This document shows positions 16,226 to 61,305 of a stretch of 64,000 nt of DNA, one piece after another (the first letter of the stretch is position 1; each line of letters begins with the position of its first letter). Position numbers and translations under genes: made by a program. This DNA comes from Macrostomum lignano (lineage: Eukaryota): contig NIVC01000031.1 in assembly GCA_002269645.1 (NCBI GenBank), positions 124,001 to 188,000 on the forward strand, in the 5' to 3' direction. The notes beneath the pieces are model-generated. The model ran no database searches, had not been told where the DNA came from, and was given only the letters and a program-made list of their open reading frames with translations.

Positions 16226-16274
16226 CTGACCGTTTTTATGCATGCGCACTTCAGCCAATCGCCAGCCCGCAAGC

Positions 16275-24268: not shown

Positions 24269-27200
24269 TCACGACACGTTTTTATCCACCTCGAACACGG
24301 CGTTCCGCATTTTGCCGCCGCACTTGATTCCTGAGTCTCCAGAGCACGGCACGTTGCAGTCTCCGTCCTCCGCTTCTCCATTGCCGTAAATGTAGTTTTC
24401 GCCGCAGAAGCACCGACTGCCGGACTGCACTGCAAAGTAAGTAGTGCCGCGGGACTTGCAGAACCGGTTGCACTTGCGCTGCGTCATTTTTCTGCTTGAA
24501 GCCGCTTTAATGGAAAATTGCGGGTACTCCTTGCTGTCATAGAAGCAGCCAAGATACTCTGAAAGTAGAAGCAAAGTACTTCATAGTTACTATCATAGCT
24601 CACAAAAGCTCACTAAGAGAAAATAGAAATAAGAGAAAAAGACTCACTAAACTTGGGCCGTTTCTTGAAATAATCACCAAACACCTGAACTTCGCATAGA
24701 GTCAGGTAAGTTTTCTTGCGACTGCTGATCATCACGACCCTGCCTACTCTGTTGCACCTGAACGTCGTCACCTTGAAGACGCTGTGAGAGTGGTACGAGC
24801 CGCACACGTGACCGTCCACCGTGACCACAAAGTTTGTGAGTCTATCAAAGCAGCAGTCGAGTCTGTTGAAGATCTTGATCTCCTTGATGTGAGCCAGCTT
24901 CTGAGTCTTGGCCATCCACCAGCCGCTCTCCAGCTTCGTGTGAGTGCACGAGTGTCCCCAGTAGTTCTGGTTGGTGTTTCCATCGATGGCTTTGCTGCAG
25001 ACGCCGTTCCAGCCGACAGAGCTCTGAGAGCAACGGCTCAGAGGCAAAATATCTGCAATTGAGTCAGTATTCACTCATAATACTCTCTACTGAAATGCAT
25101 CACGCAATAATTATTTCCCACTCACCAGATCTCTTAGCTGCCAGCTTAGTGTACTCTCCGAACACTTCGACCTCGCACAGAGTGAACCACTTCTTCAGAT
25201 TGTTCCTGATGATGACATTCTGACCGACCTTGTCGCACTTGAATCTCTTCACCGAGAAGAACGTGCTGGACCTGTGTCTGGCGCACACCTGTCCGTCCAC
25301 GATGATGTCGAAGTTGTTGAGTAGGTTGGAGCAACAGTCGAGCCTGTTGTAGATGACGACCTCCTTGATGTGAGCGGGTCTGGTAAAGCTTCCTTGCCAG
25401 AATCCGCCAGGGGCTTTAGTGTGGGTGCAGGAGTGCTTGCCGTAATCCTGGTTTTTGTTTCCATCCATGGCTCGCTTGCAGACTCCGTTCCATCCCGTCG
25501 ATGTCTGGAAGCACGTGTTGAAGCTCAGCTTGTCTGTGGATTCAGTTCAGTTGGTTTGTTTTGTGTGCTGGCTTTAACTAATAAAGTTTAGCAACAAGAG
25601 ACCTACTTTTGGTTGTGAAACATCAAATGAAGTTTGCTTTGTATGTACTCAATTTCACAAATTAGTGGTACATGTACTTCTAAAACAGTAGGTCTGGTTG
25701 CTTGTCGGTCTGGTACCTGGGCTATATGATAAATTTTGTATCTGAATAGACGCTTGTAGGAAAGAGGAGAATTTTGTTAATAAATTCGTAAATCTGAAGT
25801 CATAACTTAGTATAGTTGGGACACACATGTAGGTTTAAACGAAAATGGTAATAAATTTGTTATTTAGCCAATGAAGATTGGAGGCTATCATTGAATGAAA
25901 GGCAGCGTCTGCCTAAACTCTAAAGCATGCTTTGGCAAACCCTAGGCTCTGCCTCTGTCAAGGTGGGTTTAAGTAAAACATAGTGTTTAAATTGACATGG
26001 TGTAACTAATATATTAGGTTATGATTGTATTGTATCGTTTTTTTGCTTGTACAAACCATTCTGCATTGCCAGTCTATCTTCCTCATCCACTGTTACGCTC
26101 GTAAAACTGCAGAGTTGGCCAACATTAGTATTGTGGACAGTTGTTAGAATTTCTCACTAGACTGCTCTAAGGCTTCCGTAGCCTCCATAAAATATCACCC
26201 ACAGCAGCAGCATCAGCATCAGCAGCAGTTGCCTTGGTCCAACAACAACAGAATTGCTGCGCCCGCATCATCTCGGGCTGCATCACTCCGACCCGTGCCA
26301 CTAACCTGGCCACCACCAACCTTCCGCCCATCGGCCACATTGCTGCGGAACGAGCGGCTAACCTCGGCTACCGTCCACCCCCACGCTGGACTCCCACAAC
26401 CGGGAGACGCATCCGCCGCGCCGGCTAGATCCGACAAACGTCCCGACGAACCTGACGATCCAGCTGGACCTCACCGCCTCCTGCGGACACAGCACCCTGC
26501 ATGACCTGAAGCGGGATCGTGCCGTCGCCTACCTCGCCGACCTTGCGACGCCGGACATTGAAGTCTGGACGGACGGCTCAGCATCGGAGGGCACTACTAA
26601 CAGTAGGAGCGCGGCTGTGATAATCACCAAGCTGTGGCACCAGGTCGTCACTAGTCCAGCCGGCATTCTCACCAGCTCCACTCAAGCAGAACTGACTGCC
26701 ATCCGCACTGCCATCCAGATCACGGCCGAGCTGCACCCAGGTTTTGGACAGACGGTCCGTGTCCACTCCGACTCGCTGGCGGCTCTCAAAGCTGGACACT
26801 GGGGCCCTCACCCAGTCCACCCAGCTGGCGGCGGACTGCTGGTTTGAGCTAGCTGCCAGCAACCGCTCCTATGAACTGATCTGGGTGCCGGCCCACTGCT
26901 GTATCTCCGGCAATGAAGTCCCCGACAGGGCGGCCAACAGAGCGGTAAACCTCAACGGCGCTACTGCGGCTCCCATTACCTTCCAAGCGGCCAAAGCGGC
27001 GATCAAGCGGGACCGCCGCACCAAAGATCGGAAATTCTTTGCGACCGATCCCTGGCCACCCCTTCCGACCAACCTGACTCGCACCGAGGCGGTCGCTGTG
27101 AACCAGCTGCGGGCCGGAGCTTCCATGCTGGCTGCAGCCACTCGCCACCGAATCGGCATTGAAACCGACCCTCCCTGCCGCGATTGCGTGGCCGTGGACA

Positions 27201-30200
27201 ACGAGGATCATCTTCTGCACGAGTGCCCCCGCGCCGATCGCGTCAGGGGCCAGCTGGACCCGGATGTTCGGGATGACCTGCTTGCCCATCCGGTGGCGGT
27301 CATCAAAATTCTGCGTGCCCTAGGGCGCCTCTAGGCGCCTACCCCAGCTGCAGCCGCAGCGTTGTGGGCGCTGGCAAGAAGAAGTTGCCTTGGTGAAGTA
27401 TGGCGTGCAAATTTGACGAAAGTGCCTTCCAATGTTGAAAGAATGCATTCCAAATGATGGTCACTAACTGCGTCATCTTTACCTGTTTGCAATGTTACAC
27501 TTTGACTGCTTCCCCCCCCCCGACAATTTCTTGCTGCGCCGGAACGAAGCAACGCAGGCACACGAAATTCAAAAACACCGGCTAACTTTTTGTTGCGCAC
27601 CTTTTGAAACAAAAATCAAATCGCCAGCCCTCCGGACCGTCGAGATATTCGACGATTCTGCCAGAAGATTTAATTTTTTCCATAAGCGCTAATGTATTAT
27701 TCAGTATACCCCTGTACGCCAATCAGCACTGTGCCTCAGCGCAGCCTTGCCAAGACTCCAACTTTCATCAGTACGTTGATCACATGTGTCTGCATCAGCT
27801 CTGACTTCGTTAGTCACTGGCCTTCACCGAGACGGAGCTTCTAGACCATTAACAGGTGGCACCAGGTGACTATGAACACCCTGATACAAATTTCACGAGT
27901 TTCGCCGATCATGCCTCGACAGTGAGCAAACCTCAACTTCTGGACACCCTCAGCTGGTCTCTCGAGCATTCCATCATCACCACAACACCGTCGGCACCTT
28001 CAACATGTGGCATCAGATAACTATGGACATCCTTTTAAAACTATCAGGTTAAATGTGATTATATACCTGAAAATTTAGATTGGTCCATTTTAGTAAAACG
28101 AAAAAGAAAGACTTATCAACTTACTGCCTGTGGATCTCTTTGTGTACAATCCGAAAACCTGAACTTCGCATAGAGTCAGGTAAGTCCTCTTGCGACTTCT
28201 GATCATCACGACCTTGCCGACTTTATTACACCTGAACGTTTTCACCTTGAAGACACCGCGAGAGTTGTACGAGCCGCACACGTGACCGTCCACCGTGACC
28301 ACAAAGTTTGTGAGTCGATTAGAACAGCAGTCGAGTCTGTTGAAGATCTTGATCTCCTTGATGTGAGCCAGCTTCTGAGTCTTGGCCATCCACCAGCCGC
28401 TCTCCAGCTTCGTGTGAGTGCACGAGTGTCCCCAGTAGTTCTGGTTGGTGTTTCCATCGATGGCTTTGCTGCAGACGCCGTTCCCGCCGACAGAGCTCTG
28501 AGAGCAACGGCTCAGAGGCAAAATATCTGCAATTGAGTCAGTATTCACTCATAATACTCTCTACTGAAATGCATCACGCAATAATTATTTCCCACTCACC
28601 AGATCTCTTAGCTGCCAGCTTAGTGTACTCTCCGAACACTTCGACCTCGCACAGAGTGAGGTACTTCTTCAGATTGTTCCTGATGATGACATTCTGACCG
28701 ACCTTGTCGCACTTGAATCTCTTCACTGAGAAGAACGTGCTGGACCTGTGTCTGGCGCACACCTGTCCGTCCACGATGATGTCGAAGTTGTTGAGTCGGT
28801 TGGAGCAACAATCGAGTCTGTTGTAGATGACGACCTCCTTGATGTGAGCGGGTCTGGTAAAGCTTCCTTGCCAGAATCCGCCAGGGGCTTTAGTGTGGGT
28901 GCAGGAGTGCTTGCTGTAATCCTGGTTTTTGTTTCCATCCATGGCTCGCTTGCAGACTCCGTTCCATCCCGTCGTGGTCTGGAAGCACGTGTTGAAGCTC
29001 AGCTTGTCTGTGGATTCAGTTCAGTTGGTTGGTTTTGTGTGCTGGCTTTAACTAATAAAGTTTAGCAACAAGAGACCTACTTTTGGTTGTGAAACATCAA
29101 ATGAAGTTTGCTTTGTATGTACTCAATTTCACAAATTAGTGGTACATGTGCTTCTAAAACAGTAGGTCTGGTTGCTTGTCGGTCTGGTACCTGGGCTATA
29201 TGATAAATTTTGTATCTGAATAGACGCTTGTAGGAAAGAGGAGAATTTTGTTAATAAATTCGTAAATCTGAAGTCAGAACTTAGTATAGTTGGGACACAC
29301 ATGTAGGTTTAAACGAAAATGGTAATAAATTTGTTATTTAGCCAATGAAGATTGGAGGCTATCATTGAATGAAAGGCAGCGTCTGCCTAAACTCTAAAGC
29401 ATGCTTTGGCAAACCCTAGGCTCTGCCTCTGTCAAGGTGGGTTTAAGTAAAACATAGTGTTTAAATTGACATGGTGTAACTAATATATTAGGTTATGATT
29501 GTATTGTATCGTTTTTTTGCTTGTACACACCATTCTGCATTGCCAGTCTATCTTCCTCATCCACTGTTACGCTCGTAAAACTGCAGAGTTGGCCAACATT
29601 AGTATTGTGGACAGTTGTTAGAATTTCTCACTAGACTGCTCTAAGGCTTCCGTAGCCTCCATAAAATATCACCCACAGCAGCAGCATCAGCATCAGCAGC
29701 AGTTGCCTTGGTCCAACAACAACAGAATTGCTGCGCCCGCATCATCTCGGGCTGCATCACTCCGACCCGTGCCACTAACCTGGCCACCACCAACCTTCCG
29801 CCCATCGGCCACATTGCTGCGGAACGAGCGGCCAACCTCGGCTACCGTCCACCCCCACGCTGGACTCCCACAACCGGGAGACGCATCCGCCGCGCCGGCT
29901 AGATCCGACAAACGTCCCGACGAACCTGACGATCCAGCTGGACCTCACCGCCTCCTGCGGACACAGCACCCTACATGACCTGAAGCGGGATCGTGCCGTC
30001 GCCTACCTCGCCGACCTTGCGACGCCGGACATTGAAGTCTGGACGGACGGCTCAGCATCGGAGGGCACTACTAACAGTAGGAGCGCGGCTGTGATAATCA
30101 CCAAGCTGTGGCACCAGGTCGTCACTAGTCCAGCCGGCATTCTCACCAGCTCCACTCAAGCAGAACTGACTGCCATCCGCACTGCCATCCAGATCACGGC

Positions 30201-33200
30201 CGAGCTGCACCCAGGTTTTGGACAGACGGTCCGTGTCCACTCCGACTCGCTGGCGGCTCTCAAAGCTGGACACTGGGGCCCTCACCCAGTCCACCCAGCT
30301 GGCGGCGGACTGCTGGTTTGAGCTAGCTGCCAGCAACCGCTCCTATGAACTGATCTGGGTGCCGGCCCACTGCTGTATCTCCGGCAATGAAGTCCCCGAC
30401 AGGGCGGCCAACAGAGCGGTAAACCTCAACGGCGCTACTGCGGCTCCCATTACCTTCCAAGCGGCCAAAGCGGCGATCAAGCGGGACCGCCGCACCAAAG
30501 ATCGGAAATTCTTTGCGACCGATCCCTGGCCACCCCTTCCGACCAACCTGACTCGCACCGAGGCGGTCGCTGTGAACCAGCTGCGGGCCGGAGCTTCCAT
30601 GCTGGCTGCAGCCACTCGCCACCAAAATCGGCATTGAAACGGACCCTCCCTGCCGCGATTGCGTGGCCGTGGACAACGAGGATCATCTTCTGCACGAGTG
30701 CCCCCGCGCCGATCGCGTCAGGGGCCAGCTGGACCCGGATGTTCGGGATGACCTGCTTGCCCATCCGGTGGCGGTCATCAAAATTCTGCGTGCCCTAGGG
30801 CGCCTCTAGGCGCCTACCCCCAGCTGCAGCCGCAGCGTTGTGGGCGCTGGCAAGAAGAAGTTGCCTTGGTGAAGTATGGCGTGCAAATTTGACGAAAGTG
30901 CCTTCCAATGTTGAAAGAATGCATTCCAAATGATGGTCACTAACTGCGTCATCTTTACCTGTTTGCAATGTTACACTTTGACTGCTTCCCCCCCCCCCGA
31001 CAATTTCTTGCTGCGCCGGAACGAAGCAACGCAGGCACACGAAATTCAAAAACACCGGCTAACTTTTTGTTGCGCACCTTTTGAAACAAAAATCAAATCG
31101 CCAGCCCTCCGGACCGTCGAGATATTCGACGATTCTGCCAGAAGATTTAATTTTTTCCATAAGCGCTAATGTATTATTCAGTATACCCCTGTACGCCAAT
31201 CAGCACTGTGCCTCAGCGCAGCCTTGCCAAGACTCCAACTTTCATCAGTACGTTGATCACATGTGTCTGCATCAGCTCTGACTTCGTTAGTCACTGGCCT
31301 TCACCGAGACGGAGCTTCTAGACCATTAACAGGTGGCACCAGGTGACTATGAACACCCTGATACAAATTTCACGAGTTTCGCCGATCATGCCTCGACAGT
31401 GAGCAAACCTCAACTTCTGGACACCCTCAGCTGGTCTCTCGAGCATTCCATCATCACCACAACACCGTCGGCACCTTCAACATGTGGCATCAGATAACTA
31501 TGGACATCCTTTTAAAACTATCAGGTTATACGTGATTATATACCTGAAAATTTAGATTGGTCCATTTTAGTAAAACGAAAAAGAAAGACTTATCAACTTA
31601 CTGCCTGTGGATCTCTTTGTGTACAATCCGAAAACCTGAACTTCGCATAGAGTCAGGTAAGTCCTCTTGCGACTTCTGATCATCACGACCTTGCCGACTT
31701 TATTACACCTGAACGTTTTCACCTTGAAGACACCGCGAGAGTTGTACGATGCGCACACGTGACCGTCCACCGTGACCACAAAGTTTGTGAGTCTATCAAA
31801 GCAGCAGTCGAGTCTGTTGAAGATCTTGATCTCCTTGATGTGAGCCAGCTTCTGAGTCTTGGCCATCCACCAGCCGCTCTCCAGCTTCGTGTGAGTGCAC
31901 GAGTGTCCCCAGTAGTTCTGGTTGGTGTTTCCATCGATGGCTTTGCTGCAGACGCCGTTCCAGCCGACAGAGCTCTGAGAGCAACGGCTCAGAGGCAAAA
32001 TATCTGCAATTGAGTCAGTATTCACTCATAATACTCTCTACTGAAATGCATCACGCAATAATTATTTCCCACTCACCAGATCTCTTAGCTGCCAGCTTAG
32101 TGTACTCTCCGAACACTTCGACCTCGCACAGAGTGAACCACTTCTTCAGATTGTTCCTGATGATGACATTCTGACCGACCTTGTCGCACTTGAATCTCTT
32201 CACCGAGAAGAACGTGCTGGACCTGTGTCTGGCGCACACCTGTCCGTCCACGATGATGTCGAAGTTGTTGAGTAGGTTGGAGCAACAGTCGAGTCTGTTG
32301 TAGATGACGACCTCCTTGATGCGAGCGGGTCTGGTAAAGCTTCCTTGCCAGAATCCGCTAGGGGATTTAGTGTGGGTGCAGGAGTGCTTGCCGTAATCCT
32401 GGTTTTTGTTTCCATCCATGGCTCGCTTGCAGACTCCGTTCCAGCCCGTCGAGGTCTGGAAGCACTTGTTGAAGCTCAGCTTGTCTGTGGATTCAGTTCA
32501 GTTGGTTGGTAATGAAGCTCGCTTAATAAACAGTAAATAAATGGAGGAGATAATCAACATGTTTTAATGCCGATGCATACTGCCATAATGGATATCGTCA
32601 GGGCTTACCAAATGTATTAAAGGAAATGAAATTTCGCTCTTATATATTGTTTTTTTTATTAGAGGCAGGGGGTTGTGTGCACCCTGGCGCACTTTAAGCG
32701 GCACAGACACACAACCGGCGAGAGGCATTACCACCCATTCCGCCGACTCCCCTGAGCAGGCACACAAGCGCGCGGATACCTACGCAGGCACACACCCACA
32801 CAGGAGTGTACAGCGGCCCTAACTTTATTTTATCGTTAGGCATGTACACTTCACTGCGCATTGGGGGGTTGGCCCTCAAGGCCGTTAATTGCACGAGCAG
32901 AGCCAAGCCGAGATTCCAATTCAGCCCCAAATTAATTTGACTGCACTTGGAATCGAGCCTGGGTCGCTGGCACACGAGAGCCTGCGCTAGACCGCAGGGC
33001 TACGCCCCCTCTTCTCTTATATATTGACGTGAGACTATTGAATTTTGTAAGAACGATAACAAACTTAGCTTATTAGAGGCTATGCACATCAAGGCCCAAC
33101 AACCTACTCTGAACCATCAGCTTGCCATGGGGGCGGTGCTAGCCGTCAGCTTCAACATTTTTTAGCTCGCTCAATAACCAGACTGGACTATTTTGATTTG

Positions 33201-36200
33201 TACCACGCCTTTCACCCAAACTAGTGTTACCCTGTTATGCACTTAATTTTTACTCCTGTCAAATAGTTGATTGTTCAAGTCTATGTATTAGAGCAAAATT
33301 TAATTTCGTTTAATAAATTTAGTAAGCCCTGAGGATGTCCATTGGGTGACGAAATGCATCGGCATTAAAACATGTTTATTATCTCCTTCAGTTGATTGTT
33401 TTTCTGTGCTGGCTTTAACTGATAAAGTTTAGTAGCGAAAGACCTACTTTGGGTTGTGAAACATCAAATGAAGTTTGCTTTTTGGGTACTAAATTTCACA
33501 TATTAGTGACACCAGACGCGCAGTTTATCCTTGTCTAAAAGTGTCTCGTCTAAAAGTCTTGTCTAAAAGTCTTGTCCAATATTTAAAAAGTGCTTGGGAT
33601 TTCCTTTCGAGAATCGTAGATTACGTCAAGCTATATTAGCACCACCAGCCTGTGCCTGCGCCTCCTTTTCTTGGATGTGGTAGTTGACCTTGCCCAAGCG
33701 CCTCGAGACTCGGTACGACCTTTCCACTTGTCGCTCAGGCACCGCGTATGCCTGCGCTTTATGACGAAGTTGCGAGCGGAGCATCACGAGTAGGCCCTCC
33801 TCAATTGACACGAACTGACAGTCATGGTGGGATCATGGTTCAGGCGCTCTGATGATTTTTCTTGAGTCCGCGGCAGAAAGCCGTGATGTCTGCCGTCCGC
33901 TGTCGGCAGGTCGTCGTTCATTTGTCAGCTGTCAAGAGCCAGCCGTGAAAGACCTTGTACGACTGATGTGGGTGGTACTGTGCACCGAGGTGTTATAGAA
34001 CCAAGTAATGTACAGTACGACAGCTTCCGGTCTGTGAGAATCTTCTTGACGCCCAGTCGCTAGCAGTGACGGCTGAACATCTCGCTCTGGAATTGCTGAC
34101 CCTGTTCGCTGTGCTGCACCAGATGGGATCGATCGTCACAAAAGCTGCGTCTCCATCCGCTTAGAGAACGTGTCGCACATGCTCAGGATATATGAGTTGC
34201 ACGTCGCATGCGATTACGCGTCGGGTTCCTCGTGCAGGTCACCATCGTCGTCCCACCGAGTCTGCAGACGAGTACAGGCCACCCGGCTTGACGCATCCGG
34301 CACCACGTTGTCTCTGCACGGCCGGTACCGCAACTCGAAAAAGAACTGCTACAGAGTCGACAGTCCCCGTGCCAGCCGACCCTATACGTGTCCTTGGTCA
34401 CCAGCCGACCTTGCAGCGGTCGGTGGTCCGAATAGACTGTAGAGCACGGTACACTCAGCAAGTCCGTTCTGACGTGCTTCAGAATCCAAACCGTGCCAGC
34501 AGCTCCAGGTCTGTAGCCGGGTAGTCTCGCTCGGCCTTGTTGAGGGTGGGAGAGGCGAACGCCACCGGCAGCTTAGCGTCCCCATGCAGCTGGCTGAGTA
34601 CCGCGCTGACGGCGAACTGGCTGCTGTCCCAGCTGAGCACAAACTACCTGGTGAAATCCCGGCACTTTCACAACCGAGCCATCGTCAGCTAGTTCTCCAG
34701 TTCCTTGAAAGCTCGCTCGCAGTCGCTGGTCCATGTGAAGTCTGTTGATTTCACGCCGACCTCGCGCAGGACTCTCGCCGTCTGGCTGAACTCTTCGATG
34801 AAACGGCCGTAGAATCCATGCCGAGAGACCGCTTGACCTCTTCGGCCGAATTTGAACTAGGCATGTGGCGAATGACCTCCACCTTGCTAGGGTTCGGTGC
34901 AATGCCCTGCTCGTTGATCAGTTGTCCCAGGTACAGCAGCTGGCTATGGCCGAACACGCTCTTTGCCTTGTGTATTTTGAGACCCACATCACGCAGCCAC
35001 TGAAAAAGGCGCTCCAGCCTCACCAGATGCTCGGCGAAGGTCCTGATGACGAGAACGACATCTTCGATGCAAGTCAGCACTGCAAGTTCCAGAAATAGGC
35101 CCGACATCACCAGCTTCATGAGCCGCAGAAACGTCGCTGGGGCGGTTTACATTCCAAAGCCCATTTTGCGAAACTGCATGAGGCCAAGGGTCGAATAGAA
35201 GGCCGTATTATATAGGTCCTCCTCCGCCAACTTCACCTGGTGGTAAGAACCAGGAGCACCCGACCAGAGCATCCATAGTGTGCTGCAGGTGCGGTAACGG
35301 GTACGCCGAGCAGATTTGTGCTTCGCCTGTCCCAAGCAGCTTCAGCTTCTAGGTCTTCATATTTTCATTCCATTCGCAGTCATTGGCAAGTCCACAAACG
35401 TGTTGAGCAACTTTCTCACATTGGTTTCGCCGCTAAACTTTAGAGCCAGTAAAATGAAAACCACTTTCAAACCATGCTGTTTCACGTCAGAGTTACCAAA
35501 ACGCATCAGGCTCACTTCAATACCGGTATATGAAGGCTAGAACCTGGGTAGAACCAATGAAACCTGGGCGCCAGTGTCAAGCAGAGCGGGTGCTAACAAC
35601 TGCCAGGACGTACCTCCACGAAGACCGAGCGCACAACACTAAAGGTCCATTAGAGCGGTGCGAGCGTACGAGTACCGTTTTTTACATCTTATATTCGCTT
35701 GCCGCTTTCCACTTTGTGCCGATTGATATGACTTTGGTTACAGTAATTGCATGGAGAAAAAAGTTGGGAATTATTTTTGCAGCTGCAGTTGCTGTCATGA
35801 AATCTATACGTGAAAATTTAGATTGGCCCATTTTAGTAAAATGAAAAAAAACATTTATCAACTTACTGCCTGTGGATCTCTTTGTGTACGATCCGAACAC
35901 CTGAACTTCGCATAGAGTCAGGTAGGTCCTCTTGCGACTGCGGATCATCACGACCCTGCCTACTCTGTTGCACCTGAACGTCGTCACCTTGAAGACGCTG
36001 TGAGAGTGGTACGAGCCGCACACGTGACCGTCCACCGTGACCACAAAGTTTGTGAGTCTATCAAAGCAGCAGTCGAGTCTGTTGAAGATCTTGATCTCCT
36101 TGATGTGAGCCAGCTTCTGAGTCTTGGCCATCCACCAGCCGCTCTCCAGCTTTGTGTGAGTGCACGAGTGTCCCCAGTAGTTCTGGTTGGTGTTTCCATC

Positions 36201-37798: not shown

Positions 37799-37894
37799 GC
37801 TGAACCGTTAGAATCCTTTTGATAGTCGAATACTATCCCTTTGATAGTCTGTTATTGCTCAATTTTGAAAGGGCTTTGTGTTCAAAATTTTTGG

Positions 37895-37956
37895 CAGCTC
37901 AGCTCAACCGTTGGAGATCGGTTGGGCCTCAAGGCTGAGGCCGTGTCTATTTTATA
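37895..37956 (-). promoter_or_regulatory. Putative core promoter of lectin 1 (TATAAATA at 37955-37948 plus conserved 31-nt block)
   Basis: TATA-like octamer ~150 bp upstream of ATG 37798; block 37895-37925 is identical to 61385-61415 of lectin 2. Confidence 0.5.
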
Positions 37957-42060: not shown

Positions 42061-42074
42061 GTCTTGTATCATTC

Positions 42075-42191
42075 CTACGCCGTGCTTATTGGCTGCTGCA
42101 AAATTACTTCCTCCACTTCTTCCCCCATCAAGGCGATTAGGCTGGCTGAAATGGTCCAGCCAATCTACTCAGGCGATTCGCCTGGCAGCAA
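42075..42191 (+). pseudogene. Non-functional copy of the GGT intron 1 acceptor and start of exon 2
   Basis: cccccatcaag|gcgattaggctggctgaaatggtccagccaatctactcaggcgattcgcctggca aligns to 17295-17362; RLGWLKWSSQSTQAIRLA versus RFGRLKWSSLFAPAIRLA. Confidence 0.85.
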
Positions 42192-42450
42192 AAATCATAA
42201 ACAGAAAATACTTACATAATTTTTGCCTGATTTACCAATAAATATATTAATCACGATTGATTTTGTAGTATATTTGGGTAAGACAGGTACTAAATCAAGT
42301 CCACTGACAATTCACCTGTTTCTAATTAAGTAGAGAATAAAACCAATAATCCAGTATTTAGTTGTTTCACCTAAACCATTTCACTATATTTTAGACTTTA
42401 TTGTAGCTTTTTGTCAAGCCACTTCAAGGCGTAGTCACGTTCACAAAACT

Positions 42451-51400: not shown

Positions 51401-51482
51401 TCACTAAATTTTGTTCACAGGCCTGCGGTCTCGTAGTAAAAATTCGTGCATTTGGACACTAAACATAACTCTATCACTCTCC

Positions 51483-51554
<72 letters not shown>

Positions 51555-54500
51555 ATATCTTTAACTCTTAGCCCTGTTTGCGTAAGGCAAGAAAGAAAGA
51601 CTTCTCTACTTACTGCCTGTGGATCGCTTTGTGTACGAGCCGAACACCTGAACTTCGCACAGGGTCAGGTAGGTCCTCTTGCGACTGCTGATCTTCACGA
51701 TCCTGCCTACTCTGTTGCACCTGAACGTCTTCACCCTGAAGACGCTGCGAGAGTTGTACGAGACGCACGCGTGACCGTCCACCGTGACCACAAAGTTTGT
51801 GAGTCGGTTGGAACAGCAGTCGAGTCTGTTGAAGATCTTGATCTCCTTGATGTGAGCCAGCTTCTGAGTTTTGGCCATCCACCAGCCCTTCTGCAGCTTT
51901 GTGTGAGTGCACGAGTATCCCCAGTAGTACTGGTTGGTGTTTCCGTCGATGGCTCTGCTGCAGACGCCGCTCCAGCCGACAGAGCTCTGAGAGCAATGGC
52001 TCAGAGGCAGCATATCTGCAACCGTTGCATGTTAGATATGTAAGACTAAATGTCTGATGACTGACAAGCAGAAAATTGAGTACATGTACTAAAAGAAAGA
52101 AATGAGCGTCTTCGAGACTGACCGGCTCTCTTCTTTTGCTTGATGTACTCTCCGAACACTTCGACCTCGCACAGAGTGAGCCACTTCTTCAGATTGGTCC
52201 TGATGATGACATTCTGACCGACCTTGTCGCACTTGAATCTCTTCACTGAGAAGAACGTGCTGGACCTGTGTCTGGCGCACACCTGTCCGTCCACGATGAT
52301 GTCGAAGTTGTTGAGTCGGTTTGAGCAACAGTCGAGCCTGTTGTAGATAACGACCTCCTTGATGCGAGCGGGTCTGGTAAAGCTTCCTTGCCAGAATCCG
52401 CTAGGGGATTTAGTGTGGCTGCAAGAGTGCTTCTTGTAGTCCTGGCTTTTGTTTCCATCCATGGCTCGCTTGCAGACTCCGTTCCAGCCCGTCGAGGTCT
52501 GGAAGCACTTGTTGAAGCTCAGCTTGTCTGTGGATCCAGTTCAGTTGGTTAGTTTCAATTGCATGGATTAAAATGATAAGTTTTAGCAGCAAGAGACATT
52601 TTACGGAGTGAAAATCAAATGAGGCTTGCGTTGTCAGTACTTTATCTCTGATATTTGAGGTACCTCTATATATTAGGTGCTGTGATTTTTGGTGTGACTG
52701 AACTAGTGTTTAAGTCGAGTCTCTTCGAGCAATTAAGTCGACTATTTGCTCTTTGAAATAAGTTAAAGCATGAGGATGCTACGCAGACATTACATAGATA
52801 TCCGCGAGTAATAATACTGTCATTGAGAAGTCAGTCTTCTTCAGATACAAAAGAAATAATGGACAGTCATTAGTATTTTGATAGAAAATATAAGAAAGGT
52901 CTGAATATTTTGATACGAGTTATTAAAAATAATTTTTTCGCAGAGGATACTGACAGCAAGCGTCAGGGTGAATTTGATTCACTTCCAGTTGGGAGTGTGG
53001 CGTTGGAATAAACGAAATTGGCTTAATCGAAAAGTCCATAATTAACGAGATTTCCTCTAATCGTGTGCTAGCTATCTTATCTACACAGTATACGAGCTAG
53101 TTACCGTGTGCACTTCTCTGGCGGAAACCGTTCTGTCCTTGCAAGCTTCTTCAAAAAGATCAGCATTTTTCGGTGTGCAATTTAAGAATTTACGAGGGAT
53201 GTTCCATAAGTACTTATACTTTTGCATGCTGCTCAGGAACTACGCAACCAATCATTGTAAGTTTTATGTCGGTGGAAAGCGGCTTTACTCATCTTTAATC
53301 TGTCGCTAAAATCATTTCGTTCTGTCAACTATGTCAAAAGTTACAACAAAAAACGTAGTCAAAGGTTACCTTTGACTACTCAAGTACTACTCAAGTACTA
53401 CTACCTTTGACTACTCTTGTTCTTAAACAAGAAATTTAAAGAGCAACAACTACAATGGCAAGCATGAAAACAGAGGCGCGTTGTTGATGACAGAAAGTTG
53501 ACTTCTTTGTCACTCATCCTCGGTCGGTACCGACACCTTCTCAACGTAGTTTCCACCGGAGTTGATGCACTTGGTCCACCTGTTAAACATGCTTTTGATG
53601 GCTTCTGCGTACAGCTGTCGGGGGATGACATACAGCAGAATTCTGCGGACTTCCTCCTCGATCTGGTTCCTGGTCTCGTACACGCGTCCTTTCAGATGGC
53701 GCTTCAACTCTGGAAATAAAGCAAAGTCTGCTGGTGCCAGGTCTGGAGAGTAAGGAGGGTGAGGTAGAAGATGGAGCTTCAGCTTGCTGATTGCCTCGAC
53801 TGTCTTTTGTGCTGTATGAGGCCTTGCATTGTCATGATGAAGAATGAAAGGTCTGGGATTTTCACGACGCTTGTTCTGGATGTCATGATGCAGCTTTGTT
53901 AGCGTTTCAACGTAGCGCTCAGAGTTTATTGTAGTGTTTGGCTCCAAAAACTCGACAGTTAGAGGACCATTGCAGTCGAAAAACAGAGACAGCATGATCT
54001 TCTTTCCATGTGCGTCCCTTTGAGCTTTTACCGGAGGATCAGAGCCCTTCAGCATCCAGACCTGGGAATCACGTTTCGTTGGTGGATCAAAATGGGGAAT
54101 CCAGGTTTCATCTCCAGTGACTATCATTCGATGGAAGAGATCCCAACCACCGTATTCTTCCATCATCCGAATATTGGCCTGACAAATCTGCTGCCTCTGC
54201 AGTCTCAAGTCCGAGGTGAGTAGGCGTGGCACCCAACGAGCAGTCAGCTTGACAAAGTCCATGCGCGACAAGCAGCGATGCACAGTTGTGCTCGGCGTGT
54301 CCAGTCTATCTGCAATCTGTCGAATCGTTAGCCGACAATCTTCGTCCAGCAGATCAAGAATTCGATCGGTGAGAGCATCAGAGCCTGATGTGCAGGGGCG
54401 GCCCGACCTCGGCAAATCAGCAACATTGGTCCTTCCTGCTTCGAACTGCTCAACCCAGTTGTAGACGGTCATCCTGCTCACCGCATTAGCTCCATGAATG

Positions 54501-57500
54501 TTGCATAAATCCGCATAAATCTCTGATAGCTTTTTTCCGAGTTTCCAGAGGGTAAAAATTGCAGCGCGCTGTCCTTCCCTTGAGTTCACATCCATGGTGA
54601 TGCAGCAGCAGCCAAGGTGGTGAAACTTTACAAGATTAAGATGCTGTGATCTTAAGATTAAGATGCTGTGAAAGCTTAGGCCAGTATTTTCCATAGACGA
54701 AAAGGGTGTGGCATTCGCTTATGAAGCAAAAAAGAATGCATTATGTAGAATCCGAAATAACTCTGCGTGCTGAACTTTGAAGTTTTGATTTTGAAAATTT
54801 CTTGTAAGTCTATGGGTGACCTTTGACTACGTTTTTTGTTGTAACTTTTGACATAGTTGACAGAACGAAATGATTTTGGCGACAGATTAAAGATGAGTAA
54901 AGCCGCTTTCCAGCGACATAAAACTTACAATGATTGGTTGCGTAGTTCCTGAGCAGCATGCAAAAGTATAAGTACTTATGGAACATCCTCCATAAGTATA
55001 AGCATAAGTTATAATTTGATATAATTTAGGGAGCTACACTTTATGAACTTTCTGTTATCAGAAGTGTCTTTGTGGCAGTGATGAAGGCGAAATATTGAAT
55101 ACATCTGGCCTCCTGGAAGACAGAAATAGCCTTGAAAGATTGCCTTTCCGTGTTACTGAGACAGAAAAGCCTGTCATCCAAACAAGCAAATATAGAAGAA
55201 ATGCGAGTGACATCTGAACCGCTAACGTAAAAACTGGCACTAAGCGCACAATGATACTGAAACGTAAGGGGAAAATGTGTTATTTTGCGCAAAATGCGTA
55301 TGCGTGAAGGCGTTGGTGTTGATTTCTCTAGCTATTTCTCTATAGTAATTTCTCTATAGTACACGATAGTTGTAGTTGCCATACCATCGTAGATGTACTT
55401 AACACTATCCAATCTTGGTTCAATTTTAAGCTATCCGGCTGGCTATATCCGGGGTCAAAATTTGACGTTTCCAAAATCGCACATTAAAGCCGCGTGTCTT
55501 GTTAATCATTCACATTTTTAAGCTTGATTAAAGAACTTATTCTAGTACCTGAATAACGCTTCTAAAAACCTTACCCTAGAAACCCTAGACCTAGACCTTA
55601 CCCTATAAAAACCTTCGGAGGGCGGACAAGCCGCGGTGAGGCCTTTGGGAGTCACCGCGGCGGAGAAGTACCCCGGGGAGTCTGGTGGCGCGGCTGGACC
55701 ATCAGAAACCGCCGTGTCCTCGAACTCTCAGGGGGGGGGGCAACCCTGCTAGCCTTCCGCCTTACAACAATGAAGCGGTCCGGACACGACCTCGGAGACC
55801 TACGCCTCAAAGGTCAAGCAGCCGCTCTAACCTGCCCTGAGGATCCTCGGCGGGGACTGCGATTTGACGCCTGAGCAGCTCGACGTCGCGTGGCGTACCA
55901 TCGACGAGGGCCTGCTAAACCTAACCCAGAAGGGGGTCTTCGTTGACATCATCAAGTCCACAAAGACGAACGGATACATCCTACTGTGGTGCAAATCCGA
56001 GGAGAGCACCCAACTCCTGCGAGATCAGCTGCCCAAGTTCGACTGGCACAGCGACCTGGTCAGCTGACCTTCACCCTGGAGAGCGAGCGTCCGAAAAGAC
56101 CATCCGCCATCGGATTTGGATCAAGCGGCAGCCGGATCTCGACGCCAGTGGTCTTGTGTACCACAACACGGTCCACAAGGGCACGACCGGGACCTTTGTC
56201 GTCCTCGGCGTGACGAAGGGATGGACCAAGCGGCTACCATATGGCTCGACCCTCCACCTTGGTCTCCATTAACAGACCATCGTCCGTTGTGAGGAGGGCA
56301 AGACGGAGGTCAAGAACGACGGGAAGCGCGCCGCACCCGGAGCTGGGGCTCCGGCTCCGCCGGCCAAGCGGCAACAGCAACCTGATCCCGAGCCTAACAA
56401 GGCACTTCGTGCTGCTGATTCTGCCTCGTGCGGACGTAGACCCGTCCGCGGTAGTCGGCGGTCAGGACTAATTCAGCACGCCTTTAACGAAGCTCAGTCT
56501 CTGAGACTTCACCTCTAGTGGACTCGTGCCCCTTGTTAAACTGCTCAAAGCCAGCCAAAGGAACTGGACTGCGGCCCGGCTCCGCCATCCAACAGGTGGA
56601 ATCGCCACAGGTGGAGGATGCTGTCGGCCGAGCCAGACTCCTGACGGCGGGGTGCTGAGGAAAAAGGCGGTGCAGTGCGGCCAGGTGTCTCACCTGCCGC
56701 GGGCGCCGCGTCCACCTCCGCGGCTGGGGAGGCGGCTGAGCCTTAGCCAATGGAAATTGGCGACTCAACTCTTACGGATGAAACTGAGGACGAGCCGTTT
56801 TTTGCCTTCCCTTGAGAGTAGACATGACTGTCTTTCAGGGAATTCACTGCTTGCAGGTCAACCTGCAGCACAGGTTTGCTGCTTCAGTCAATCTTATGAA
56901 GCACATTGACTTAAATGCACCACGGATCATCCTGCACCCGGGAGGTAAATATGGCACCAAGATCCTGTATCATATTGTCAAGCTCAATAACGCATGGCTC
57001 AGATCGGAACTGTCCACCAGGGACATATGTGTCATCCAATCTGAAGACATACTTCCTGGGAGGACTACACTCATCGCCTCGGTTTGCCTACCGGGCAACG
57101 GCGAAATGATTTAAGAAGAGCTTGTCACACTGGTCGAGCTTTGCTTCACCAGTAAAATCCGACCGTCGAAAATTGGCAACTTTTGCAACCTCGAAAACGA
57201 AGACGCCAAACACTTCGTCTGCTACTGGCCAGATTTAAATCGAGACCAGATAAACTATAATTACCTCGGGCTCAACCCGTCCAGGGACGACGCTTGCCGG
57301 ACCGAGAATATCACACGACTCATTCGGTTTCTCCAGGCTACCAAACGAGTCTCCGTCTTTTCCAACGAAGACCACGCTGCACGTTAAAGCGTTGCTTTCA
57401 TTTTCCTGGTCAATGATATTCCCAAAAAGCTCTTGAACATATAAAGAAGAAAAAAAACTTTCGCAACAAGGAACCAGAAGTATGCTGGCAATTCTGAACT

Positions 57501-58910
57501 GTCAAATATTAACAACTTTGGACTTACTGCCTGTGGATCGCTTTGTGTACGTGCCGAACACCTGAACTTCGCATAGGGTCAGGTAGGTCCTCTTGCGACT
57601 GAAGATCTTCACGATCCTGCCTACTCTGTTGCATCTGAACGTCTTCACCTTGAAGACGCTGCGAGAGTTATAAGAGGCGCACGCGTGACCGTCCACCGTG
57701 ACCACAAAGTTTGTGAGTCGATTAGAACAGCAGTCGAGTCTGTTGAAGATCTTGATCTCCTTGATGTGAGCCAGCTTCTGAGTCTTGGCCATCCACCAGC
57801 CCTTCTGCAGCTTCGTGTGAGTGCACGAGTATCCCCAGTAGTACTGGTTGGTGTTTCCGTCGATGGCTCTGCTGCAGACGCCGCTCCAGCCGACAGAGCT
57901 CTGAGAGCAATGGCTCAGAGGCAGCATATCTGCAACCGTTGCATGTTAGATATGTAGGACTAAATGTCTGATGACTGACAAGCGGCAAATTGAGTACATG
58001 TACTAAAAGAAAGAAATGAGCGTCTTCGAGACTGACCGGCTCTCTTCTTTTGCTTGATGTACTCTCCGAACACTTCGACCTCGCACAGAGTGAGCCACTT
58101 CTTCAGATTGGTCCTGATGATGACATTCTGACCGACCTTGTCGCACTTGAATCTCTTCACTGAGAAGAACGTGCTGGACCTGTGTCTGGCGCACACCTGT
58201 CCGTCCACGATGATGTCGAAGTTGTTGAGTCGGTTGGAGCAACAATCGAGTCTGTTGTAGATGACGACCTCCTTGATGCGAGCGGGTCTGGTAAAGCTTC
58301 CTTGCCAGAATCCGCTAGGGGATTTAGTGTGGCTGCAAGAGTGCTTCCAGTAGCTCTGGCTTTTGTTACCGTCCATGGCTCGCTTGCAGACTCCGTTCCA
58401 GCCCGTCGAGGTCTGGAAGCACTTGTTGAAGCTCAGCTTGTCTGTGGATTCAGTTCAGTTGGTTAGTTCTTACGTGCTGTATTTAAGTGAAAACCTTTAG
58501 CAGCAAGAAACTTACTTCGGGGCGTCAAAATCTTACGAAAATTTTCGTTTTAGGTACTCGTGCTAAAATTTACGTATTTGTGGTACGTCTTCATAGTGGT
58601 AGGTGTGGTGTTTTAGTTTTTGACTTATGGTTACGATTCGTTTAAAAGGTTGAGTCTTTTTGGCACTAACTTTATAAGTAAGTTTTTGACTGGACGCTTG
58701 GAGGGCTAAGAGACAGCAATACTCGTATAATAGCTGGTATCAGATCTGATTCTCTACTCTGTGTCAGTACTGTTACACTAGACCGACGTTCGATGATAGA
58801 TGATATGACGTCGTTATTGGTCAGCGTGATATAAAATAGTCATTTGCCAACGACGCCCATTGATGTCGAGCAGATCACATACGTCAGCGGGCGTTGAAAT
58901 ATTGCATGGG

Positions 58911-58952
<42 letters not shown>

Positions 58953-61305
58953 AGGGAAGGGGGGAGAAAGAGAGAGATATCGAGCGAGTATGAGCAATGA
59001 CGAGTATTTGCTATTGATAAGCAACGCAGGAGTCTTAGGGCATTGCATTCATTTTCATGCTCGAAACAATGCCTAAAAAGCAGTCGAATAAAATAAGGAG
59101 AAAACAACAACAAAAACAAAAACAACAAGGTACTGCTCCCGCCGGCCACGCAGTAGCCAGAAAGGGGGAGCAGTCAGAAAACGCGTCTCTGGGCCATCGC
59201 CCTCAAGAAGTCGCCTCCTGCACGTCTTCGCAAGTCTGCACGTTTGCTTGACCCGGCCCCTATCCAATCGGTTCTGCCAGGTGGCGCTGGAGACCGTGAG
59301 GCCCAATTAGTCCGGGCCCCAGCTGTACCAGGAAGCGCGTTTAGGAGAAAAGCAAAAAATCGTCACAAAGAATCAGAAGTACATGTATGCTGGCAATTGT
59401 AAAACGTCCAATATAAACAGCATTACACCCGCGTTGCAGTTGTTATACGAGTAATAGCTTTTATACGGGACAATTAAGCCTGGCCATGCTGTCGTAAAAC
59501 AAAAAAGACTTCTCTACTTACTGCCTGTGGATCGCTTCGTGTACGAGCCGAACACCTGAACTTCGCATAGGGTCAGGTAGGTCCTCTTGCGACTGCTGAT
59601 CTTCACGATCCTGCCTACTCTGTTGCACTGAACGTCTTCACCTGAAGACGCTGCGAGAGTTGTACGAGACGCACGCGTGACCGTCCACCGTGACAACAAA
59701 GTTTGTGAGTCGATTAGAACAGCAGTCGAGTCTGTTGAAGATCTTGATCTCCTTGATGTGAGCCAGCTTCTGAGTCTTGGCCATCCACCAGCCCTTCTGC
59801 AGCTTCGTGTGAGTGCACGAGTATCCCCAGTAGTACTGGTTGGTGTTTCCGTCGATGGCTCTGCTGCAGACGCCGCTCCAGCCGACAGAGCTCTGAGAGC
59901 AATGGCTCAGAGGCAGCATATCTGCAACCGTTGCATGTTAGATATTAAGACTAAATGTCTGATGACTGACAAGCAGCAAATTGAGTACATGTACTAAAAG
60001 AAAGAAATGAGCGTCTTCGAGACTGACCGGCTCTCTTCTTTTGCTTGATGTACTCTCCGAACACTTCGACCTCGCACAGAGTGAGCCACTTCTTCAGATT
60101 GGTCCTGATGATGACATTCTGACCGACCTTGTCGCACTTGAATCTCTTCACTGAGAAGAACGTGCTGGACCTGTGTCTGGCGCACACCTGTCCGTCCACG
60201 ATGATGTCGAAGTTGTTGAGTCGGTTGGAGCAACAGTCGAGCCTGTTGTAGATAACGACCTCCTTGATGCGAGCGGGTCTGGTAAAGCTTCCTTGCCAGA
60301 ATCCGCTAGGGGATTTAGTGTGGCTGCAAGAGTGCTTCCAGTAGCTCTGGCTTTTGTTTCCGTCCATGGCTCGCTTGCAGACTCCGTTCCAGCCCGTCGA
60401 GGTCTGGAAGCACTTGTTGAAGCTTAGTTTTCCTGGGAATTGGTTTTGATATTTTAACTTAGTTACCCAATTTTTACATGTACTTGTACTCTTTTACATG
60501 TATTTTTACATGTTTCTTGTACTCTTTGTGGGTCTTTCTGGTCGCAGTCATTCGCTCACAGTATAAATTAAGTTACAAGAAATTCTCAAAGCCCAAATTT
60601 GAAATAGGTCACTTGATTTGCGCAACCTACGTCCGCTTCTGCGTGTTGTGTACGCGCCGAAGACCTGAACTTCGCAGAGAGTTAAATAGGTTCTCGCTCG
60701 ACTTCGGATCATCACGGAGCGACCGACGCGGTTGCAGTGGAATGTCTTCACACTGAAGGCGCTGCGAGAATGGTATGAAGCACACTGATGGCCATCCACC
60801 ATCACCACAAAGTTTGTGAGTCGGTTGGCGCAACAGTCAGCTCTGTTATAGATTTTAATCTGTCTGATGTGAGCCAGCTTCTGAGTCTTGGCCACCCACC
60901 AGCCGTGTTCAAGCTTCGTGTGAGTACACGAGTGTCCCCAGTAGTTCCGGTTGGTGTTTCCGTCGATGGCTCTGCCGCAAACGCCTTTCCAGCCAACGGA
61001 GCTCTGAGAGCAATGGCTAAGCTTCAGCATGCCTGAAAATATTTTCAGACATGTTAGTTATATTTGAATGTATAAAACCGTTCATTCGTAGGCATACGTT
61101 GAATGTGAAGTCAGTAATTCATGACTCATGCTACAGCTCATGCTTTCGGACTCGCTTTTTTGACAGTGTTTCTCTGTATGTTATAAAGAAATAAACGAAT
61201 CAAAATTTAGGAGATAAACTTACTGTAGGCAGTTACAGCCTGGAATAGCATCAAAAACAGAAGCCATTGATGGCAAGCCACTTGAAAAGTCGGCCTGCTG
61301 ATCAT
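42451..61305 (-). CDS. Secreted multi-domain lectin 2: signal peptide + 15 F-type lectin domains + WSC domain (~2149 aa if repaired)
   Basis: Exons: SP 61305-61224 (MISRPTFQVACHQWLLFLMLFQAVTAY); FTLD 61032-60631, 60432-60028, 59921-59522 (two 1-bp deletions), 58441-58037, 57929-57528, 52527-52123, 52015-51614, 49313-48909, 48801-48400, 46772-46362, 46043-45633, 45560-45159, 44423-44013, 43694-43284, 43211-42807; WSC 42737-42451. All GT-AG, phase 1. AATAAA at 42402-42397. Confidence 0.9.
47140..48130 (+). mobile_element. Crypton-like tyrosine recombinase relic
   Basis: Fragmented frames give CSVEAIKIHLSKLP and LSKDFTNNSIRST...VSRHEWVDSVTRY, resembling the CPV...YLSKL, TNHSLRAT and SGH..S...Y motifs of Crypton/DUF3504 recombinases. 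Confidence 0.6.
51481..51553. repeat. (CT)n microsatellite
   Basis: Direct. Confidence 0.95.
53193..54991 (-). mobile_element. Mariner (DD34D) DNA transposon with ~178-bp TIRs
   Basis: TA at 53191-53192 then CGAGGG; TIRs 53193-53370 and 54815-54991 with about 5-6 differences, right terminus imperfect. Confidence 0.95.
53510..54595 (-). CDS. Mariner transposase, uninterrupted ORF (~361 aa from MDVNSREG)
   Basis: HTH region, WVPRLL, IVTGDETW, HHDNARPH, HPPYSPDLAPADF; 34 residues between the second and third catalytic Asp. Confidence 0.95.
   Translation of the reverse strand: MDVNSREGQRAAIFTLWKLGKKLSEIYADLCNIHGANAVSRMTVYNWVEQFEAGRTNVADLPRSGRPCTSGSDALTDRILDLLDEDCRLTIRQIADRLDTPSTTVHRCLSRMDFVKLTARWVPRLLTSDLRLQRQQICQANIRMMEEYGGWDLFHRMIVTGDETWIPHFDPPTKRDSQVWMLKGSDPPVKAQRDAHGKKIMLSLFFDCNGPLTVEFLEPNTTINSERYVETLTKLHHDIQNKRRENPRPFILHHDNARPHTAQKTVEAISKLKLHLLPHPPYSPDLAPADFALFPELKRHLKGRVYETRNQIEEEVRRILLYVIPRQLYAEAIKSMFNRWTKCINSGGNYVEKVSVPTEDE
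55600..57390 (+). mobile_element. Internally deleted non-LTR retrotransposon (R1/Jockey/I-like): ORF1 remnant + AP endonuclease start
   Basis: CLQVNLQHRFAAS is a typical APE N-terminus; STRDICV...IASVCLP follows; broken ORF1-like frames upstream at 55770-56272; no RT seen. Confidence 0.7.
58915..58949. repeat. (GA)n microsatellite
   Basis: Direct. Confidence 0.95.

Follow-up and report, generated by a model that had tools for sequence, protein, structure and literature searches.

Tandem F-type lectins have been documented only as intact proteins: FBP32 was purified as a 32 kDa protein of two domains, and the oyster bindins, which carry 1–5 F-type lectin domains (FTLDs), are described as intact multi-domain proteins. 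The review of the F-lectin family from which these descriptions come makes no mention of proteolysis, cleavage or polyproteins, and an architecture joining FTLDs to a WSC domain is absent from the two F-lectin reviews that the literature search gave. Polyproteins built of folded units have been called rare in nature (PMC3079579). Here we describe a locus of Macrostomum lignano within a window of 64,000 nucleotides (the whole stretch of DNA that was analysed; contig NIVC01000031.1, positions 124,001 to 188,000, assembly GCA_002269645.1 (Mlig_3_7), identified by 100% identity over 31,550 nt). Two genes duplicated in tandem on the minus strand, spanning 24269–61305 from the gene 1 ATG at 61305 to the gene 2 stop codon at 24269, encode 23 FTLDs and two WSC domains. 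An initial annotation had proposed that both genes are precursors cut at dibasic linkers into single lectins. We favour, with a rough probability of 0.55, a secreted, intact and highly multivalent F-type lectin array with a C-terminal WSC domain. Such a strongly basic protein would be secreted and stay mainly intact, the array would cross-link or agglutinate fucosylated glycans in mucus, in secretions or on microbes, and the WSC domain would add a second glycan specificity; we infer both the secretion and the action as an intact protein.

The gene models follow from a scan for the C-terminal FTLD motif CEVxV[FY]G, whose 23 matches all fall on the minus strand, from 24.6 to 61.0 kb, together with tblastn of the window, which found no further FTLD or WSC fragments, hidden or degenerate. 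Each FTLD corresponds to one exon. The intact FTLD exons measure 402–411 nt, are all multiples of 3 in phase 1-1, and are flanked by canonical acceptors (TTGCAG/AT, CCACAG/AC, CTTCAG/AC, TTCCAG/AA, TTTCAG/GC and CCCAG/GA; here and below a slash marks the exon boundary) and canonical donors (GTAAGT, GTGAGT, GTCAGT and GTAGGT). These splice-site models and tblastn bear out the 23 lectin modules plus WSC in two genes that had been annotated at the outset. Starting from a signal peptide (SP), gene 1 has the layout SP-B0-[A1-B1]x4-[C-A2-B2]x2-WSC (15 FTLDs) and gene 2 the layout SP-[A3-B3]x4-WSC (8 FTLDs). With the one broken exon of each gene skipped, the open reading frames (ORFs) encode 2015 aa (227 kDa, isoelectric point (pI) 9.9) and 1068 aa (118.5 kDa, pI 9.6), respectively. 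Both N-termini look by eye like the signal peptides that were first annotated, with Arg at position 4, a hydrophobic core LFLMLFQAV and then V-T-A.

Database proteins of M. lignano match the window proteins at 85–97% identity. The annotated gene at the locus, BOX15_Mlig033443g2 (P0127, 1020 aa), covers window positions 58376–42451 with 7 of the 15 gene 1 modules, and its junctions equal the inferred ones (KKRA-D-MLPL, KRSTG-N-KLSF, RRSG-K-KLKF, AAKRS-D-VLPL and KRRPKF-E-YLGC). This short array may reflect either a collapse of the repeats when the transcripts were assembled or genuine exon skipping. Introns of 69–5000 nt separate all units. An intron that links an A exon to the B exon after it is 72–107 nt long; one that leads from a B exon into the next unit is 0.7–5 kb long and contains transposon fragments. 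Recent unequal crossing-over of 2- or 3-exon units enlarged the arrays, and transposon fragments in the long introns were copied along with the exons. Gene 1 modules 12 (45159–45560) and 15 (42807–43211) are the same throughout the domain and diverge only once the linker begins (TYVKRSTG versus KYFKRRPKF), which places a recent unequal-crossover breakpoint there, at the 3′ end of the exon.

The modules are F-type lectins by sequence and by predicted fold. A two-module fragment searched with phmmer against the PDB matched 3cqo (FBP32, E = 3e-28), 2j22 (2e-16), 3le0 (1e-14) and 1k12 (4e-10), and the Pfam matches PF22633 and PF00754 both exceed their cut-offs. The AlphaFold2 model of P0005 has a mean predicted local distance difference test score (pLDDT) of 89.9 and 3cqo as its top Foldseek match, and its single FTLDs align to 1k12, 2j1r and 2j1t with template modelling (TM) scores of 0.73–0.83 (Foldseek), in agreement with the F-type jelly-roll fold. 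Each intact module contains 8 Cys, and 19 of the 21 intact modules carry the fucose motif H-X25/26-R-x-D-C-C-x-x-R, including the adjacent Cys-Cys; the published F-lectin motif spacing is 24, versus 25–26 in the window modules. The window FTLDs are predicted to bind fucosylated glycans. In two intact A3 modules of gene 2 (exons starting at 32484 and 25533), Leu replaces the last Arg of the fucose His-Arg-Arg triad; counting the frame-broken exon, gene 2 has this Leu in three of its four A-type modules (NRLDCCSNLL; 32077–32484, 25126–25533 and the frame-broken 36341–36746). The Leu-bearing A3 modules may, from their sequence, have lost or changed their sugar specificity. The WSC domain of both genes is Pfam PF01822 (66.2 bits against a cut-off of 27.8, profile positions 1–82 of 82). 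The exons of the two genes are as follows.

61224–61305, minus strand: gene 1 exon 1, start codon and putative signal peptide (MISRPTFQVACHQWLLFLMLFQAVTAY), ends in phase 1
60631–61032, minus strand: gene 1 FTLD module 1 (B0), linker AYTTRRSG/R
60028–60432, minus strand: gene 1 FTLD module 2 (A1), linker EYIKQKKRA/D
59522–59921, minus strand: gene 1 FTLD module 3 (B1), linker SYTKRSTG/N; frame-broken, 400 nt versus 402
58037–58441, minus strand: gene 1 FTLD module 4 (A1), linker EYIKQKKRA/D
57528–57929, minus strand: gene 1 FTLD module 5 (B1), linker TYTKRSTG/N
52123–52527, minus strand: gene 1 FTLD module 6 (A1), linker EYIKQKKRA/D
51614–52015, minus strand: gene 1 FTLD module 7 (B1), linker SYTKRSTG/N
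48909–49313, minus strand: gene 1 FTLD module 8 (A1), linker EYIKQKKRA/D
48400–48801, minus strand: gene 1 FTLD module 9 (B1), linker SYTKRSTG/N
46362–46772, minus strand: gene 1 FTLD module 10 (C), linker QYTTRRSG/K
45633–46043, minus strand: gene 1 FTLD module 11 (A2), linker EYTKLAAKRS/D
45159–45560, minus strand: gene 1 FTLD module 12 (B2), linker TYVKRSTG/N
44013–44423, minus strand: gene 1 FTLD module 13 (C), linker QYTTRRSG/K
43284–43694, minus strand: gene 1 FTLD module 14 (A2), linker EYTKLAAKRS/D
42807–43211, minus strand: gene 1 FTLD module 15 (B2L), domain equal to module 12, linker to WSC KYFKRRPKF/E
42451–42737, minus strand: gene 1 last exon, WSC and stop codon; AATAAA about 60 nt downstream
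37717–37798, minus strand: gene 2 exon 1, start codon and putative signal peptide (MTSRSNFQVAWHRWLLFLMLLQAVTAN), phase 1
36341–36746, minus strand: gene 2 FTLD module 1 (A3), frame-broken, 406 nt versus 408; linker reads KLALRDL, intact form EYTKLAAKRS/D
35867–36268, minus strand: gene 2 FTLD module 2 (B3), linker SYTKRSTG/N
32077–32484, minus strand: gene 2 FTLD module 3 (A3), linker EYTKLAAKRS/D; third basic triad residue is Leu
31602–32003, minus strand: gene 2 FTLD module 4 (B3b), linker LYTKRSTG/N
28600–29007, minus strand: gene 2 FTLD module 5 (A3), linker EYTKLAAKRS/D
28125–28526, minus strand: gene 2 FTLD module 6 (B3b), linker LYTKRSTG/N
25126–25533, minus strand: gene 2 FTLD module 7 (A3), linker EYTKLAAKRS/D; third basic triad residue is Leu
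24648–25052, minus strand: gene 2 FTLD module 8 (B3L), linker to WSC DYFKKRPKF/K
24269–24558, minus strand: gene 2 last exon, WSC and stop codon

After splicing, the linkers between FTLDs read (S, T or L)YTKRSTG-N, TYVKRSTG-N, (A or Q)YTTRRSG-(R or K), EYTKLAAKRS-D and EYIKQKKRA-D, and the linkers from FTLD to WSC read (K or D)YFK(R or K)RPKF-(E or K). The dibasic motifs are all exonic, with donors after KRSTG/a, KRS/g, KKRA/g, RRSG/a or c, RRPKF/g and KRPKF/a, and the Lys/Arg-Arg pair followed by Ser or Ala that had been noticed between the FTLDs therefore persists within exons after splicing. Two details of that observation change. In the forms given as LAAKRSG and IKQKKRAG the Ser or Ala at P1′ stands, but the final G is an intron codon and the spliced residue is Asp (AAKRS-D, KKRA-D). 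The motif is present in the linkers counted as 23 of 23, but this count is pseudo-replication: the modules are recent duplicates with only 5–6 linker variants among 11 module variants, so the 23 linkers are not 23 independent observations. Identity between modules is about 50% for A versus B, 66–68% for C versus B and 90% for A1 versus A3.

Only the P2–P1 pair of the linkers is basic, with Y, A, Q, T or F at P4. The departure from the furin R-X-K/R-R consensus was correctly recognised in the initial annotation, and because P4 is never basic in any linker, we rejected a furin site or one of the type used by nematode polyprotein allergens (NPAs). The warning that the domains are basic and hold internal dibasic sites also holds (pI 9.6–9.9; internal VCKRAMD, SVKRFKC and SRKRTYL). 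A proline was thought to block cleavage before the WSC domain. Both FKRRPKF and FKKRPKF contain it, but the first pair in FKRRPKF, KR, has Arg at P1′ and the block is not watertight; a simpler reading is that the FTLD-to-WSC joint is an evolutionarily separate linker.

The linker pair provides most of the points that weigh against an array that simply stays intact. All 12 real linkers of this clade have [KR]R at most 14 residues from the FTLD end. None of the 17 distinct linkers taken from diverged multi-FTLD paralogues of M. lignano (for example YASLAHKGGKLPL, YAEVSTARLPL and YLSGNPYGARLPM) has it, and 6 of 102 FTLD linkers from other taxa do; a pair of such uniformity is unexpected for a simple spacer. 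Half of the proteins' [KR]R sites fall within the linkers, which make up about 10.5% of the residues. Across three aligned positions the B and C linkers show KRS, TRR, KRR and KKR, never the non-dibasic TRS, while the A1 and A3 linkers differ at five positions (nine base changes and a codon deletion) around a constant AAG AGA. Arg codons vary synonymously between linker variants (CGA/AGA, CGC/CGA, AGA/AGG).

In a neighbour-joining tree of the modules with 200 bootstraps, all replicates recover the A types as a clade and 173 recover B+C, but only 3 recover A+B+C. The A modules cluster with those of the paralogues P0008 and P0014, the B modules with those of P0006, P0007 and P0009. The pair follows both the A and the B lineage although these are not each other's closest relatives, indicating that the motif follows the gene and not module ancestry. 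This is a further point for constraint, as is the placement of the linkers in the AlphaFold model, where they hold the only [KR]R sites in extended coil. Two facts of another kind also count against an intact array: 2 of the 23 FTLD exons are frame-broken in this assembly (59522–59921 and 36341–36746), and the portion of the NCBI record covered has no called gene for gene 2.

Composition and shared ancestry temper the linker comparison. The window proteins contain 15–17% Lys plus Arg, and their linkers are 26% basic compared with 11–16% in relatives. The A and B linkers have "YTK" in common; the motif may therefore have arisen once and been spread by duplication or conversion, in which case the independent sample size may be 1. 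On balance the comparison with the linker background, which the initial annotation had suggested, favours constraint: the dibasic pair is moderately more than chance would give, is specific to this gene clade and, from the sequences, appears maintained. Conservation of the dibasic linker across the family was rejected, as the pair is missing from all diverged M. lignano paralogues. The protein database contained no close orthologues in other Macrostomum species, and the nearest match outside M. lignano was 41% identical. This homologue, P0020 (locus L002; JGI 3300037891, contig Ga0395524_0251819), lies on an intronless contig, is likewise very rich in Arg and Lys, and has "PKR" after every complete FTLD (PKRSG and PKRVP between FTLDs, PKRVK in the C-terminal tail). 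P0020 may represent another lineage whose FTLD linkers are dibasic.

The strongest competitor, which we regard as possible though clearly the less probable, is the cleaved polyprotein itself. A PC1/3-, PC2- or kexin-type convertase would cut after each linker KR or RR in the regulated secretory pathway, releasing 14 (gene 1) or 7 (gene 2) lectins of about 15 kDa and of three or four types, together with a single FTLD-WSC unit kept whole by the Pro in its linker; on this view the cleavable linker would have arisen in this gene clade in particular, and in its two module lineages alike. The clade-specific pair with Ser or Ala in every inter-FTLD linker fits this proposal, as do the two or more contiguous basic residues that always persist when the positions around them vary (KRS, TRR, KRR and KKR; AAKRS versus KKRA) and the way the motif tracks the gene through module lineages. 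So do the putative signal peptide, the 8 Cys per module, which make each module self-contained, and the precedent of the nematode polyprotein allergens with their folded units of about 15 kDa. In the AlphaFold model the linkers are coils of about 8 residues (186–193, IKQKKRAD) with a block pLDDT of 78–83, the lowest internal confidence but not disordered, whereas the internal sites lie in a short helix (VCKRAMD), a strand (SVKRFKC) and a 6-residue hairpin loop (SRKRTYL). This modelled placement is compatible with selective cutting but far from proof.

Several observations count against cleavage. The linkers have no Lys or Arg at P4 and fit neither furin nor the NPA motif K/R-X-K/R-R, so a neuroendocrine-type convertase would be needed in the producing cells. 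Their length, with coils of only about 8 residues, also speaks for an intact array. An intron of up to 5 kb lies between all units, whereas tandemly repetitive polyproteins are reported to have few or none (PMC3079579). Cutting would abolish multivalency, the usual benefit of tandem lectins, and would put the internal SRKR site before Thr, in its surface loop, at risk as well. The incomplete Pro block, the shared "YTK" and the Lys/Arg content, which makes adjacent basic residues not rare by composition, all weaken the inference from the linkers. The polyprotein idea is a reasonable, testable hypothesis, plausible but unproven, that draws its support from comparative sequence evidence for constraint on the linker pair; the furin site is excluded. 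If it were true, this would be the first processed polyprotein among F-lectins, going by the F-lectin review without mention of processing, and a rare tandemly repetitive polyprotein with every unit a separate exon. It would also mean a fixed-ratio lectin mixture mass-produced from one transcript, unlike the strategy of avidity by multivalency.

Published protein data touch the family rather than these two genes. Peptides of an M. lignano WSC and FTLD paralogue (P0006/P0016 type, 2090 aa, alternating WSC and FTLD; NSIYTTGLPAR, AIDGNTNQNYGK and TATGAWWQAR) occur in Dataset S2 of Wunderer 2019, from footprint mass spectrometry, as would be expected if the family acts in secretions; the WSC-to-FTLD linker of this paralogue is LPARRRPRVSRLPL. 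A search of the covered part of the Wunderer 2019 supplements for six tryptic peptides from the window genes gave no match, and trypsin data cannot discern cleavage. Searches of the literature gave no paper on Macrostomum F-lectins, the locus tags or Macrostomum convertases, and for lectin polyproteins they returned only unrelated papers. M. lignano permits RNA interference, in situ hybridisation and transgenesis, making the question directly testable.

Less probable still is an isoform generator, in which exon skipping or unequal recombination varies the number and order of FTLDs and the dibasic linker is incidental. The intact FTLD exons, all multiples of 3 in phase 1-1, would allow this, and skipping the two broken exons restores both ORFs. 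P0127 joins B1 (48801) straight to C (44423), P0122 joins A1 to A1 and B1 to A2, and the repeat number of oyster bindins (1–5) is set by alternative splicing (F-lectin review). The short models are, however, equally explained by short-read repeat collapse or by copy-number differences between assemblies, and the clade-specific dibasic pair is left unexplained. The broken exons themselves contain four 1-nt deletions, two per exon. Both gene 1 deletions lie in G runs, typical of long-read assembly errors; an intact gene 1 module 3 is present in P0002, and an intact gene 2 module 1 in P0001, P0003 and P0126, of which P0001 and P0126, like P0002, are predictions from the other assembly. The "GGC-GC" deletion that leads to KLALRDL recurs in P0003 and P0126, which come from another assembly and have it in a different module. 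It may thus be genuine variation, propagated by conversion, and no error of the assembly.

Least probable are basic linkers with some other role, namely charge binding of anionic glycans, extracellular trypsin-like cutting in gut or secretions, or functionless hitch-hiking from an ancestral "YTKRS": the pI of 9.6–9.9, the linkers more basic than those of relatives, the common "YTK" and the Lys/Arg-rich regions of Mlig-ap1 that bind anionic carbohydrates in M. lignano adhesion speak for them, but charge needs no adjacency while every variant keeps an adjacent pair ending in Arg, and pure hitch-hiking does not account for a pair that outlasts the rewriting of the A1 linker and the alternation of KRS with TRR.

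The surroundings of the arrays are rich in repeats. The ORFs at 40068–42072, with TRPETPLQPDQKHHYNQTRNTIT repeats, were considered as a mucin-like part of gene 1 and rejected, being non-coding satellite past the stop codon and AATAAA. This satellite (40128–42052, between the genes) has a 23-nt unit (ATGGTGTTTCTGGTCTGGTTGTA) in about 84 copies with 93% matches and extreme GC and AT skew. Since 23 is not divisible by 3, the satellite reads as long spurious ORFs of up to 372 aa in all three frames, with a 23-residue "repeat". Within the 5-kb intron between gene 1 modules 5 and 6, an uninterrupted 394-aa ORF of a mariner/Tc1-type transposase (53510–54694, minus strand; HTH_48, Transposase_1 and DDE_3) marks an element that may have been recently active. 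The long introns of gene 2 hold retroelement fragments with weak RNase H and reverse-transcriptase matches (26229–27612, 29703–30764 and 34170–35119), the first two near-identical and duplicated along with the A3-B3 exon pair. Immediately downstream of a B1 exon there is a (CT)42 microsatellite (51469–51552), with CT repeats again around 58.9 kb. In oyster bindin genes a CT microsatellite and a retroposon adjoin the duplicating repeats (F-lectin review), and by analogy the two loci may share the same repeat-expansion context. Plus-strand ORFs at 16242–19278 match gamma-glutamyltranspeptidase (PF01019, E = 2e-24 and 1.5e-22) and are apparently exons of a neighbouring gene on the opposite strand.

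Among described systems, MsaFBP32 of striped bass (PDB 3cqo) is alike in family, fold, fucose motif and adjacent Cys-Cys (E = 3e-28), and also in having FTLDs head to tail with a short linker, its "GY-RAPTGENLAL" aligning with the window "GSYTKRSTGNKLSF". It differs in having 2 domains, no WSC and no dibasic linker pair, whereas the window genes have 8 and 15 domains plus WSC. Prohormone and neuropeptide precursors, pacifastin-type inhibitor precursors and fungal Kex2-processed precursors use plain KR or RR, with Ser or Ala at P1′ and Pro at P1′ disfavoured. These KR-spaced precursors free short peptides or small knots from flexible spacers, unlike the window units, which are beta-sandwiches of 134–137 residues on linkers of about 8 residues.

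The nematode polyprotein allergens (ABA-1) resemble the window genes in their signal peptide, in a dozen or so similar folded units of about 15 kDa and in a regularly spaced basic motif, but they are helical lipid binders with K/R-X-K/R-R sites, few or no introns and demonstrated cleavage (PMC3079579). The window genes have the putative signal peptide and the many similar units, and lack both the K/R-X-K/R-R sites and the paucity of introns. The sperm bindins of the oyster Crassostrea gigas likewise have variable arrays of near-identical FTLDs formed by intragenic duplication, with repeat numbers changing in frame and with retroelement sequence and a CT microsatellite adjoining the repeats. 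They are acrosomal, with no WSC or dibasic linker reported. In the window genes each exon of the array holds a whole FTLD. Even without cleavage, F-lectin arrays of 8 and 15 domains are unusually long, and the locus shows exon-per-domain arrays growing by unequal crossing-over, with one breakpoint inside a linker.

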